Positions 1,156 through 52,032 of a stretch of 64,000 nt of DNA are shown piece after piece; within the stretch, counting starts at the first letter, position 1; every line of letters starts with the position of its first letter. The notes under the pieces were generated by a model, which was not told the origin of the DNA, made no database searches, and saw nothing but the letters and a program-made list of their open reading frames with translations. The DNA is taken from the NCBI GenBank assembly GCA_038087875.1, contig CM076001.1:1674001-1738000 (forward strand), in the 5' to 3' direction. This stretch comes from Malacoraja senta (taxonomy: Eukaryota). A program made the position numbers and the translations under genes.

Positions 1156-2063
1156 CTAGTTGAACCTTTTTTTAATTTGATTTAAGGGGTATTTAATAGC
1201 AAACGTTAACTGCCCCCTGAATCTAGATTGCGTCGCTGCATATACGCAGGAGTTAATGCAGGAACCGATAAGCTCCAACATGTGTCCGCTTTCTTGCAGG
1301 ATAAATTTTGGATCGTTGGAATTGATGCCGCTGGCATAACTGTTGCCTGTAATTTGTACGTGCAGAAAATTCACAAGGTAGATCAACCGCAACAAGATAA
1401 AACACCCCGAGATCACCATGAGTAAAATGATAGACTTTTTTCTGCTCTCCATCTCCGGGTCACATTTATTTTCTCCGTTGCTCTGGCATCGGAGCCTTCT
1501 GCGGGATCGACTGGCTGCGAGAATGTGCCTGACTGTCAAAATATTGAGCAGCAAAATCAGTAGGAACGGGACGCATGGGTTCAATACAGGGCGTTGCCAG
1601 TCATAGATTCTCCATACAACGGACGTATAATAGCTACTTTTGATGACGCAGTACCAGGGTACATTATCAGTGACGTACATTGGTTCGAGAGGAAAGAAAG
1701 AGGGAATGTTTTTCAAACAGACCAGCATGCCAACTGTCCCGATAACGACCGCCGCGGTTTTTTCGGTGCAATATCGCAGTCTCAATTGTTGGACGCAAAT
1801 GGCAGTGAATCGGTCGAAGGCGAAAGCTACCGTTAACCAGACGGAAGTGTCTTTGGAAACCCAGCTGAGGACAAGGATGAGTGTGCAGCCTGGCGTGGTG
1901 GAGAAGAAACTAACTGGGAAATAAATAGCCCGTAGGCGGCTTAATATCACGACGGTAACGATGACCAGGAAATCCGCCACCGCCATAAACACCAGGTAAA
2001 GGGTGATACACTTGGAGAGACCGCACTTTCCCTTCGACAGAATCACAATCGTCACCAAGTTCG
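1156..2063 (-). CDS. GPCR-1 exon 2: GPR139/GPR142-like class A 7TM receptor, intact (325 aa with exon 1)
   Basis: Acceptor cttgcag|CG AAC TTG at 2063 and TAG at 1156-1158. Motifs ANLVTIVILS (TM1), YLVFMAVAD (TM2), AFAFDRF (DRY-like), PWYC (ECL2), INSCVY (NPxxY-like). These align by eye to human GPR139 GLPANILTVIILSQ / TIDRY / INFFLY. Confidence 0.93.
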
Positions 2064-2533
2064 CTGCAAGTGGGAGGCAGAGTAGTTAGTAATGTAACTG
2101 TCCAATTGCGGCCAATTAATCAGGACATTGGTAGACAATTTATCACATTAACAGATTGCTTACAGATTTCGAATAATCAATTTAAGGAAGGATAACGATT
2201 TCCTCGTTAAATTCATGATCCCAAATATACGTCCATTCTAGAATTCAAAATATCACTTGCTTTGAATCATATGAAGATTTAGGTTTACCAGAACAAAAAC
2301 ACTTCGAGTTACAAGAAATTGCACATGTTGGAACCTTCACCAATACACGGAATGGAAGGTACACAAAAATGCTGGAGAAACTCAGCATCTATGGAGCGAA
2401 GGAAATAGGCAACGTTTCGGGTCGAAACCCTTCTCCAGACGGAATAGGCTCGGCTGTTCAGGCAGCATCTCTAGAGGGAAATATACAGTTCAAGACTAAA
2501 CCTTAAGAAGGGATTTTTCCGGGGGGGGGTCCG

Positions 2534-2807
2534 TTTTAGAGATACAATGCGGAAACTGACTCTTCGCCCACCAAGTCCGCGCCGACCAGCGATCGTTCTA
2601 TACTACACAGGGTGGATATTTGTTTTACCGAAGCCAATTAACCGACAAACCTGCACGTCTTTGGAATTTGGGAAGAAACGGGAGAAGCCCCAGGCGGTCA
2701 CAGAGAAAATGTGCAAATTCCGTGCAGATAATATCCGTAGTCAGGATTAATCCATGGTTTCTGGCGCTGTAAGACAGCGACTCTACCCCTGCGTCACTGT
2801 GCCGTCC
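2534..2807 (-). mobile_element. tRNA-derived SINE (elasmobranch HE1/V-SINE-like), approx.
   Basis: Reverse complement matches the SINE copies at 10564 and 60078 (tRNA-like head, central domain, TAAAC-type tail). Confidence 0.75.
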
Positions 2808-2869
2808 CCAGAACATCAGATTCTGACCCGTATCTGTGGAGGCAATGGATTGTCGGCGTTTCTTATCTG

Positions 2870-3190
2870 TTTTGTTTTGTTTAGTTCAATTTAGTTCTAT
2901 TTATTTCCGTCTAATTTAGTGCAGTTCAGTTTAGTTTGGTTTAGTTTAGTTTAGTTTAGTTTAGTTTAGTTTAGTTTAGAGATACATCGTGGAAACAGGC
3001 CCTTCGGTCAACTGAGTCCGCGCCGACCAATGATCCCCGGACACAAACACTTCCCTACACGCATTTGGGAGAATTTGTGTTTATATCAAGCTAATTAGCC
3101 TACAAACCTGTGTGCCTTTGGAGTGTGGGAGCAAACCGCCGCAGCCATAGAAACCCATGGCGGGAAAATGTACAAACACTGTACAGACAT
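2870..3190 (-). mobile_element. tRNA-derived SINE 3' part with expanded (TTTAG)n tail, approx.
   Basis: (TTTAG)n at about 2870-2978 is followed by gatacatcgtggaaacaggcccttcgg, the reverse of the SINE 3' end. Confidence 0.75.
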
Positions 3191-3262
3191 CACAATTAAA
3201 ATGAATTGGGAATCATCTGACGAAGCAAATCAGTAAAGCCATTTTAAATAAGCACGAGTGAC

Positions 3263-49300: not shown

Positions 49301-49587
49301 AATGAATTTTCAACTTAAATCAGATGACCCATCCAGTCTATATTGCAAAAACAGTTATGACTTCGATGTGATCCAAAGCAAGCGTCAGCACTTTCAATGC
49401 ATCCTACGCGATCAATTAGAATTGCATGAAAATGACTGCATTCATTTGTTTGTTCTGAACATTCAAAATAACAACAACGATGTCGCAAGCTAATTGGCGC
49501 TCCAGAGGTTAACGCCGGGTATAACTGCAACCGTGGCCGCGCTTAGTTCAGAACCTACACCTGAATAGGCCAACGACGTCACGGAAA

Positions 49588-49657
49588 ATGCACGCGCCTG
49601 GAAACGGCCCGGTCTTTGCTATTTATTATACTATTCTTGCGGTTTTTGGTGTTCCAG
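49588..49657 (+). CDS. GPCR-4 exon 1 (MHAPGNGPVFAIYYTILAVFGVP)
   Basis: ATG at 49588, 70 nt, CCAG|gtaatg donor. Confidence 0.92.
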
Positions 49658-50549
49658 GTAATGTTTACGGCAGAGGAACAGGCGCGCTTACAATGTTTGA
49701 CCATTCCGCATTGCTTGGTAATCGACATTTTTAGTTTTCTTTTTTTCAGACGTCGGAAGTGTTAACCAATGCAGCGCCGCTACTCCCTACTGTTTTTTTC
49801 GTTGTGATATCTTCGTGAAAAGAATAAATGTAATTGGTCTATTTTCTTCCACAGATGCTACTAGTCCGGTTGGGTTCGATTAGTAGTTTAATATTTTTTA
49901 GTCAAAACCAACAGTCTTTCCAGAAACAAGACATGCAAACGAAACGAGGCATCTTTGGGTGTCCCTTGCTGCAAATCCCTCGGTTACAGGAATCATTGAA
50001 ACCAAACTTCTAACTCCCTTTAATCGTTTTTTGCTGACAGGACACGTGTATCAATGCCCATGGCCATGTCGCGCTCTTTCAGTGCCATCGTTCATGGTCG
50101 TCTGACATTCATTGTATCCTTACGGCTCTTCGTGTTTTCTTACTGTCTTATTGTCTTTTATCATCTATTTCTTATAATACTATGCGCTGTTACTCACTTG
50201 CGTAATATTGTGTTACTTCAATATGAGAAGTTTATTGAGCGCTTTCGTCTGCTATAATCGCTCTGCACGCAAACAAATGTGAAATTTGATCTGTCGTCGC
50301 GTACTTTATAAAGCCGCACCTCTCAGCACCAGAGACACCAATCCTAACCTCGAGTGCCATCTGTGTGGTGTTTGAACGGTCTCCCTGAGTACGTGTTGAG
50401 TTGTTCTGGATGCGCCCGTTTCATCCCACACCCAGGCAGGTCCGTTAATGTACCATTGTAAATTGCCCCTTTTGCGTAGAGGAGTGTAAAATCTGCGAAG
50501 TATTGATAACACCATTACCGCTGGATTAGTGTAGTTGGGTCGTCCACTA

Positions 50550-50870
50550 GTTTTTAGTTTTAGTTTTAGAGACAGCACGGAAAGATACCCTTCGGCCTAC
50601 CGAGTCCGCGCCGACCAGCGATCCCCGTACACGAGCATTATCGTACACACGCGGGACACACTAGGGACAATTTACTTTTTTTTTTACTGAAACCAATTAA
50701 CCTACAAACCTGTACATTTGGGAATGTGAGAGGAAACCGGAGCACACTGAGAACCCCCACGCGGTCACGGGGCGAATGGACAAATTCCGTACACACAGCA
50801 CGCTAGTCAGGATTGAACCCCGGTCTCTGGCGCAGCAAGGCAGCAACTTTACCGCTGCACCACCTGGACG
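50550..50870 (-). mobile_element. tRNA-derived SINE in the GPCR-4 intron, approx.
   Basis: (TTTTAG)n tail followed by the reverse SINE body. Confidence 0.75.
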
Positions 50871-51124
50871 TTGGTGAGTGAGGACTCGTTGGACCAAAGA
50901 TTCCGTTTCCACGATCCATATATCTCTAATTTAAAATGTGATTGCGACGTGTTTGGGAGAAACGTGCTTCTGTGCGAAAAAGTATCCATCGGTAAAACGA
51001 TCGGTCTTAATTGCTGAACAAATTGTCAAAAACACGTATCTTATTCCCGCATCGTATTTACCATAAGTAACTTAATCAGTAGCCCGATTCATAATCACTC
51101 CCATCTCTAACTCTTCTCCAACAG

Positions 51125-52032
51125 CGAACTTGGTGACCATTCTGATTCTTTCTCAAGGAAGATGTGGCCTCTCGAAGTGCGTCACTCGCTACCTGGTGTT
51201 CATGGCGGTTACGGATTTCCTGGCCATCATCACCGCTGTGATATTGAGCCGGCTTCGGCCTATTTACCTCCCGGTTAGTTTCCTGTCCACTCTCCCGTAC
51301 TGCAATCTCGTCATCGCCTTCAGTTGGGTTTCCAAGGACTCTTCCGCCTGGTTAACGGTCGCCTTCACCTTCGATCGGTTCGTCGCCATTTGCTGTCAAA
51401 AGCTGAAACTGAGATATTGCACCGAGAAAATAGCGGCCGTCCTTATTGGAACAATTTGTGTGCTGGTCTGTTTCAAGAATATCCCATTTTATTTTGAATA
51501 TAAACCCATGTACATTATTAATAAAGTCCCATGGTACTGCACCATTAAAGAAATCTATTATACCTCTGTGTCATGGAGGTTCTACGAATGGTTGCACCGT
51601 ATGCTCAACCCCTGTGTACCGTTCCTTCTAATTCTGATGTTCAACATTGCGACGATCAGGCACATTCTAGCGGCCAGTGGAGCCCGCAAGAGGCTCCGAG
51701 CCCAGAGCAATGGAGATCAACAGAGTGACCCGGAGATGGAAAGCAGAAGGAAGTCCATCATTTTACTTTTGACAATCTCGGGTACATTTATCTTGTTGCG
51801 AATTACATATATCGGAAATTTTCTATTTGTACAATTTACACCCAATGACTATGCGGACGGTTCCAATGCAAATGACCCAAGGTTTATCCTTCAAGAAAGC
51901 GGATATATGCTGGAAATCCTCAGCTCCTGCACCAATTCGTGTATTTATGCAGGGACTCAGACTAAATTCCGAGAGCAGTTGAAGGGTGCGGTAAAATATC
52001 CCTTCAACACAGTCAGAAAGTGGTTCAAATAG
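51125..52032 (+). CDS. GPCR-4 exon 2: GPR139/GPR142-like receptor, intact (325 aa total)
   Basis: ccaacag|CG AAC TTG acceptor and an open frame to TAG at 52032. Same 7TM motifs as the paralogs. Confidence 0.94.

Follow-up and report, generated by a model that had tools for sequence, protein, structure and literature searches.

In a 64,000-nucleotide (nt) stretch of the Malacoraja senta genome (assembly GCA_038087875.1, contig CM076001.1, positions 1,674,001 to 1,738,000 of the forward strand; hereafter the window, numbered from its first letter), four genes for G-protein-coupled receptors (GPCRs) of class A carry arginine or lysine in place of the toggle tryptophan at position 6.48, together with glutamate or aspartate at position 7.42. 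Arguing from sequence and from analogy with solved receptors, we favor, with slightly better than even confidence, a reading in which these residues form a buried charge pair or, more likely, belong to a K3.36–E7.42–R6.48 cluster. This reading rests on the position of the residues, their charge complementarity, one coincident origin, and constraint at the individual sites.

All eight motifs of transmembrane helices (TM) 6 and 7 that an earlier note on this DNA had quoted were found exactly where it placed them, in four open reading frames (ORFs). These ORFs correspond to exon 2 only; a 70-nt exon 1 (MHAPGNGP…GVP plus one base) lies 1.3–2.5 kb upstream of each. In all four genes, a phase-1 intron interrupts TM1, and its splice signals are canonical, with GT as donor and a pyrimidine-rich CAG acceptor. 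The genes, their motifs, and their core codons are as follows.

1156..4628 (-), GPCR gene 1 (325 aa): exon 1 4559-4628, exon 2 1156-2063; TM6 FILLRLI 1381-1401, TM7 MLELIGSC… 1240-1281; R6.48 CGG 1387-1389, E7.42 GAG 1273-1275, K3.36 1852-1854, W3.33 1861-1863.
15904..18194 (+), GPCR gene 2 (328 aa without an extra G at 17515): exon 1 15904-15973, exon 2 17277-18194; TM6 FLLLRLT 17940-17960, TM7 MLELLSSC… 18060-18101; R6.48 AGG 17952-17954, E7.42 GAG 18066-18068, K3.36 17486-17488.
28032..30586 (+), GPCR gene 3 (328 aa): exon 1 28032-28101, exon 2 29670-30586; TM6 FLLLKLT 30332-30352, TM7 MLDLLSSC… 30452-30493; K6.48 AAA 30344-30346, D7.42 GAT 30458-30460, K3.36 29879-29881.
49588..52032 (+), GPCR gene 4 (325 aa): exon 1 49588-49657, exon 2 51125-52032; TM6 FILLRIT 51787-51807, TM7 MLEILSSC… 51907-51948; R6.48 CGA 51799-51801, E7.42 GAA 51913-51915, K3.36 51334-51336.

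Gene 1 is 93% identical to little-skate P0014 and gene 3 is 95% identical to little-skate P0001, which likewise carries K6.48 and D7.42. The closest public relative of gene 4 among the matches listed is thorny-skate P0002 (78%). The claim that the only Lys paralogue is also the only Asp paralogue holds in the window and for the little-skate orthologue P0001, but it fails as a rule, as sawfish P0003 pairs R6.48 with D7.42.

The residue numbers, originally assigned by eye, are right in Ballesteros-Weinstein terms, as judged from a gapless profile alignment to GPR139. A single family sequence reaches GPR139 weakly, over TM1–TM5 only (E 3e-5). A profile of 102 family sequences aligns over its full length with GPR139 chains 7vug/9m42 (E 5e-17), and TM6 and TM7 contain no gaps. 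The alignment places the family W on GPR139 W241 (6.48), the family T on P6.50, and the family Q on A274, a column that precedes N7.49 by seven residues and Y7.53 by eleven. Family "sfillWlT" thus lies over GPR139 "IFATLWAP", and family "nmlQllssctNtfiY" over GPR139 "NMLALLNTAINFFLY"; the GPR139 strings cited at the outset (FATLWAP and NMLALLNTAINFFLY) are both present in the solved chain. The GPCRdb name of the Ballesteros-Weinstein 7.42 residue is 7x41, GPR139 L275 being 7x42 (PMC5430874, PMC8807744).

The window products are class A GPCRs. Copies 1, 3, and 4 score 53–55 bits against Pfam 7tm_1 (cutoff 30.5), and the copy-2 fragment scores 32 bits. An AlphaFold2 model of P0014 (predicted local distance difference test score, pLDDT, 81.8; predicted template modeling score, pTM, 0.80) contains seven TM helices and helix 8. 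In a fold search with this model, the top matches are all class A receptors, and the best solved match is GPR139 chain 7vug_R. All copies have N1.50, D2.50, D3.49, R3.50, F6.44, N7.49, and Y7.53; the variant microswitches are F at 3.51 and S at 7.50, the latter being T in the rest of the family. The C-W-x-P motif (6.47–6.50) is absent, the window copies reading L-R/K-L/I-T/I and the rest of the family L-W-x-T. Class A receptors often deviate at this motif, and such a deviation is a fold variant that does not exclude a protein from the class.

The receptors belong to a large family with its own normal state. Homologue searches returned 1,295 to 2,032 clusters per query, of which the best 120 were listed for each. 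The family comprises more than 1,800 clusters and, where a species is named among the best 120 listed per query, it is always chondrichthyan; nearly all listed members bear the automatic NCBI name "probable GPR139". An exhaustive profile search yielded 136 clusters (50% identity) at E <= 1e-30. Ten of their representatives were looked up, and the named non-chondrichthyan ones, from coelacanth and amphioxus, are among the weaker matches. In these searches, the family has so far been found in cartilaginous fishes only. It shows the large tandem birth-and-death expansion in one lineage that characterizes lineage-specific chemosensory-type families, and it appears to be undescribed, as a literature search found no paper on this chondrichthyan receptor family. 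The window genes are distantly related to GPR139 and are not its orthologues, because identity to human GPR139 is about 24%, the single-sequence match is at E 3e-5, and cartilaginous fishes hold more than 1,800 paralogous clusters.

The pair of residues was counted within the family, in 287 sequences that cover both 6.48 and 7.42. The 6.48/7.42 pair is W/Q in 186/287, Y/Q in 25/287, R/E in 11/287, K/D in 2/287, R/D in 1/287, and R/Q in 1/287. The GPR139 pair W/A, initially taken as the reference state, is therefore replaced as comparator by the family's own W6.48/Q7.42, and the change is from W6.48/Q7.42 to R/K6.48 plus E/D7.42. Both changes are single-base steps (TGG to CGG or AGG; CAR to GAR). 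The loss of Pro6.50 had been counted as part of the same departure. The loss is real, with T or I in the window copies, but it is unlinked to the switch, since it is family-wide: W/Y-bearing members have T in 74 cases, L in 20, and P in 5. A link between the two was rejected on the ground that T6.50 is the family norm.

The switch is confined to a narrow part of this family. R or K at 6.48 occurs in 15/287 sequences, 14 of which have E or D at 7.42, and no W6.48 or Y6.48 gene among the 287 has an acid at 7.42. The R/K+E/D genes fall in one clade, which is batoid only where the species is named. Ten public clusters fall in it, including five from little skate, two from thorny skate, and two from smalltooth sawfish, and the window copies add to these. 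Two more homologue searches, with W4 and P0048 as queries, yielded no new R/K+E/D gene among the best 120 of about 2,000 matches each. A careful maximum-likelihood tree, built with the trait columns removed, contains a 15-row clade (support 89/91) in which 13 R/K+E/D rows and the W/Q genes P0011 (I-W-Q at 3.36/6.48/7.42) and P0012 (K-W-Q) form an unresolved polytomy. In an approximately unbiased test, monophyly of the R/E set is not rejected (p = 0.44), which does not prove monophyly. The switch thus represents about one evolutionary episode, at the base of one batoid clade. Sawfish P0010 has the R/E state at the DNA level (CGT/GAG), with W3.33 and K3.36. On sawfish CM019866.1 at about 55.31–55.39 Mb (L001, L002), P0010 lies about 60 kb from the W/Q gene P0011 (TGG/CAG); the two being so close on the same chromosome, the switch arose within one tandem cluster.

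Few columns distinguish the clade from its nearest W/Q sisters, and most lie in the helical core: Y3.33 became W, R3.36 became K, W6.48 became R/K, Q7.42 became E/D, and T7.50 became S. K6.48 arose later in one lineage and D7.42 in two. The usual family core is R3.36/W6.48/Q7.42. The basic residue at 3.36, overlooked by the earlier note, is R in about 70% of family members and K throughout the R/K+E/D clade, and 3.36 is the classic TM3 neighbor of 6.48. Because 3.36 is conserved as basic and neighbors 6.48, the likely unit is a three-residue charged cluster, and a K3.36–E7.42–R6.48 arrangement appears likelier than a simple 6.48–7.42 pair. Added together, the charges of the triad 3.36/6.48/7.42 come to +1 both in the common R/W/Q state and in K/R/E. 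This unchanged charge fits a change from Q to E that compensates for the gained positive charge.

Charge at these positions varies elsewhere in the family as well. In other chondrichthyan subfamilies (P0123, P0144, P0148, P0149, P0154, and others), 7.42 is basic (MLR/MLK) when 3.36 is I, T, V, or L. R3.36 accompanies Q7.42, and a basic 3.36 together with a basic 7.42 occurs in 0/210 sequences. A single positive charge thus seems to relocate between TM3 and TM7 across the family; an independent-pairs analysis has no power for this 3.36/7.42 relocation. D3.37 is conserved widely in the family. The distant relatives P0224, P0271 (coelacanth), and P0257 have D7.42 with S or C at 6.48 and R6.51 (…LSATRLV…/…MLDL…), a combination that may represent another, independent case of an acid at 7.42, opposite a basic TM6 residue one turn above.

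Purifying selection acts on the intact copies. The pairwise ratio of nonsynonymous to synonymous substitution rates (dN/dS) among genes 1, 3, and 4 is 0.15–0.20; for copy 2, it is 0.17 versus gene 1, 0.12 versus gene 4, and 0.52 versus gene 3. Across genes, Arg6.48 is encoded by CGG, AGG, CGA, and CGT and Glu7.42 by GAG and GAA. With four Arg codons and two Glu codons in different genes, the two residues have persisted while their codons changed synonymously.

Copy 2 calls for separate treatment. Compared with copy 3 (94.6% nt identity), it has one extra G at 17515, which breaks the frame in TM3 between VWFTVA and FDRF. Contigs of four public runs were aligned to 15850-18250 at >=97% likeness (that is, at least 97%). 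The runs are DNA, because introns are evenly covered and there are no splice joints. The extra G is absent from run X1, in which an 825-nt contig from the same organism shows no other difference, and it is also absent from runs X17 and X3, both from other organisms. Since three independent read sets lack the extra G, an assembly indel or a private allele is the most likely cause of the frameshift, with copy 2 itself probably intact; its reading as a pseudogene was rejected as the main interpretation on the same evidence. Runs X1 and X2 show five further single-base indels relative to the window, all in the intron. The differences from the public contigs stand at 16161, 16220, 16574, 16685, and 17106 (X1 and X2) and at 17515 (X1, X17, and X3), a pattern that suggests residual 1-bp assembly errors or an allele. 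The same may hold for further frameshifts elsewhere in this genome.

These data bear on the view that the genes are non-functional and lost the toggle Trp through relaxed constraint, which is very improbable and already largely refuted. The frameshift of copy 2 in the assembly, a fifth exon 1 without an ATG, the birth-and-death turnover of the family, and the dN/dS of 0.52 between copies 2 and 3 all speak for decay. However, dN/dS is 0.12–0.20 among the other comparisons, the ORFs are intact, and none of the other microswitches has been lost. The state has also been kept in skates and a sawfish through synonymous codon turnover, and the frameshift is absent from the reads.

Under the favored reading, the receptors would most likely work as follows. 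Opposite formal charges, R/K6.48 and E/D7.42, occupy positions that are neighbors in solved homologues. The new 7.42 carboxylate would lie against TM6, as residue 7.42 of NTSR1 does, and would neutralize the new guanidinium or ammonium group at 6.48. With K3.36, it would make up a buried group of charges at the bottom of the ligand pocket, immediately over an intact sodium site (D2.50, S3.39, N7.49), and the net charge of the triad would be kept at +1, as in the R/W/Q ancestors. The cluster would take over the packing of the toggle Trp and its relay between the pocket and F6.44, and ligand selectivity would depend on the more variable residues higher up (5.43, 6.51, 6.52, and 7.39).

Several points weigh against a charge pair or cluster. 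The phylogenetically independent 6.48/7.42 contrasts number two, of which one is concordant and one (P0048, R/Q) is not. The coupled change maps to approximately one branch, so that covariation carries no statistical weight, and any two substitutions fixed on that branch would seem coupled. Horn-shark P0048 shows that Arg6.48 with Gln7.42 is possible at least briefly; it is a singleton, the only other case of a basic 6.48, and its paralogue, 89% identical, is W/Q. That both charges are retained is weak evidence, as 50% of clade columns are class-conserved and 27/47 charged positions keep their sign. Finally, K3.36 and D2.50 offer E7.42 and R6.48 other possible partners.

Some of these points lend themselves to an explanation by coincidence or hitch-hiking, in which both substitutions were fixed, together with several others and without interacting, on one long internal branch. 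The single approximate origin, the existence of two contrasts only, and the high baseline conservation in the clade are what such a history would leave behind. However, the changes are charge-complementary and occur at positions known to touch (PMC4515772), and 6.48 and 7.42 are two of only about five clade-defining core positions. An unpaired Arg or Glu is also costly to bury in a helix bundle, and the lone unpaired Arg, that of P0048, is a singleton. We consider coincidence improbable.

The alternative partners raise a different arrangement, in which E/D7.42 would pair mainly with the basic 3.36, and R/K6.48 would extend into the sodium pocket and act on D2.50 as a tethered cation in place of the allosteric sodium ion. 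K3.36 is invariant in the clade, a basic 3.36 is older than the switch (P0012 is K-W-Q), and D2.50, S3.39, and N7.49 are all intact; moreover, 6.48 caps the sodium pocket in class A receptors (PMC4515772). This pairing has a small chance of being correct, marginally above that of coincidence, because Q7.42 stands alongside R3.36 in 83/210 sequences, so that an acid is not needed there, and the acid appears only once 6.48 turns basic.

A third possibility, less probable than the charge cluster yet the foremost of its competitors, is an open charged ligand pocket in which R/K6.48, E/D7.42, and K3.36 contact a small zwitterionic or charged ligand, such as an amino acid, instead of each other. GPR139 is an amino-acid receptor, and the deepest part of its agonist sits between 3x36, 6x48, and 7x42 (PMC8807744). 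The family pocket is charge-rich throughout (R3.36, D3.37, R5.43, E7.36), and the occurrence of R/K7.42 in other subfamilies when 3.36 is non-basic, with both in 0/210 sequences, resembles a conserved ligand-facing charge. However, in a low-dielectric core, two opposite charges separated by a few ångströms would normally be expected to pair when the receptor is empty. Clade members all share the triad while their upper pockets vary, which is a better fit to a structural core than to selectivity.

Comparison with known receptors places the charge cluster in context. GPR139 (7VUG-7VUJ, 9M42) is the best solved match both by sequence (profile E 5e-17) and by fold, and it shares F6.44, an N-x-x-x-Y TM7 motif without Pro7.50, D-R at 3.49–3.50, and the TM1-splitting intron. 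It differs in sequence (about 24% identity) and in being a single conserved gene in other vertebrates, whereas the family in cartilaginous fishes has more than 1,800 clusters. In solved GPR139, I112(3x36), L275(7x42), and W241(6x48) line one deep pocket (PMC8807744), and the importance of W6.48 for GPR139 agonism, asserted beforehand, is borne out by the loss of potency in W241H and W241A (PMC5430874; PMC8807744). The residues that GPR139 requires for its ligands include R6.51, W6.48, F3.33, and H5.43(x) (PMC8807744 and PMC5430874); of these, R6.51 is Y, F, or N here, W6.48 is R/K, and F3.33 is W. P6.50 of GPR139 is T/I in the window genes, and its A7.42 is E/D. The extracellular N-terminus of the window family, unlike that of GPR139, has only about 7 residues in the P0014 model.

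A small residue is indeed usual at 7.42, with G, A, or S in 73% of class A receptors (PMC4515772). In NTSR1 crystal structures, F358(7.42) touches W321(6.48), determines the rotamer of that residue, and also stacks against Y6.51 (PMC4515772). A large 7.42 side chain thus positions 6.48 and links the pocket to F6.44, and the proposed ion pair would need the same geometry. The NTSR1 contact, however, is aromatic and hydrophobic, and Trp6.48 and Pro6.50 are kept. LHCGR and TSHR, with M6.48 and Y7.42, are class A receptors that lack Trp6.48 and have an unusually large 7.42 residue (PMC4515772), but their pair is neutral, without charge complementarity, and their architecture and ligands are quite different. 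The nearest comparators are the W/Q family members P0011, P0012, and P0004, which have the same gene structure, chromosomal cluster, and all other microswitches, at 66–72% identity to the window copies. They differ in W6.48, Q7.42, usually R3.36 instead of K, a residue other than W at 3.33, and T7.50 instead of S.

The charge cluster can be extended to a bolder proposal, which we regard as speculative and rather unlikely: that K3.36–E/D7.42–R/K6.48 is a new class A activation microswitch, a buried ionic lock in place of the Trp toggle. If so, activation would need the salt bridge to be broken or rearranged, perhaps through protonation, through an ion, or through a small zwitterionic ligand lodged between the charges. 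The batoid clade would then differ from its W/Q sisters in ligand class or constitutive activity. The ligands suggested previously (pH, anions, or peptides) are pure conjecture.

Trp6.48 is among the most discussed GPCR activation switches, and receptors that carry a charged residue in its place yet are under selection are rare natural test cases. A literature search found no paper naming Arg or Lys at 6.48; the sole text matches were to the Drosophila genome release "r6.48". The clade has a built-in control in its W/Q sister genes, which are 66–72% identical and lie in the same gene cluster, so that only a few reciprocal mutants would be needed to learn if an ion pair can stand in for the toggle Trp. 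The family to which these receptors belong is a very large expansion, found here in cartilaginous fishes only.

Two further features of the window concern the GPCR genes.

63480..63549 (+): another exon 1 of this family, the fifth in the window, with ACG (Thr) in place of the ATG start; its exon 2 would fall past the window end.
14060..14495: an assembly gap (N) between gene 1 and gene 2, outside all exons and introns.

The copy with the fifth exon 1 may be dead or may use another start. The gap touches only the linkage distance between genes 1 and 2.

Other sequences are interspersed among the receptors. Two ORFs, at 55566-55892 (+) and 61195-61470 (+), have Pfam V-set matches (E 2.5e-11 and 6.9e-16) and contain …YWYR… and …Y(I/L)CALR, which identifies them as T-cell-receptor-type V segments interspersed between the GPCR genes. 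Near sawfish P0010 and P0011, no V segment was detected within ±10 kb by a strict pattern, a result that is not conclusive. An ORF at 39966-40832 (-) encodes a reverse-transcriptase domain (RVT_1, E 7.5e-26), and related repeat fragments are scattered in the window; retroelement debris therefore lies between the genes.

Large direct duplications of 84–91% identity copy GPCR genes with their flanks. One pair, 14751-18605 and 26624-30999, holds genes 2 and 3. The other, 9632-13769 and 59122-62844, lies upstream of the fifth exon 1 and includes the V segment at 61195. The exon-1 peptides of gene 1 (4559-4628, -) and gene 4 (49588-49657, +) are identical (23/23 aa), and the two genes share 12 nt upstream of exon 1 and the donor (GTAATGTT), but their full coding sequences are only about 75% nt-identical. 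This identity of exon 1 may reflect gene conversion or a mosaic duplication of the 5' part.

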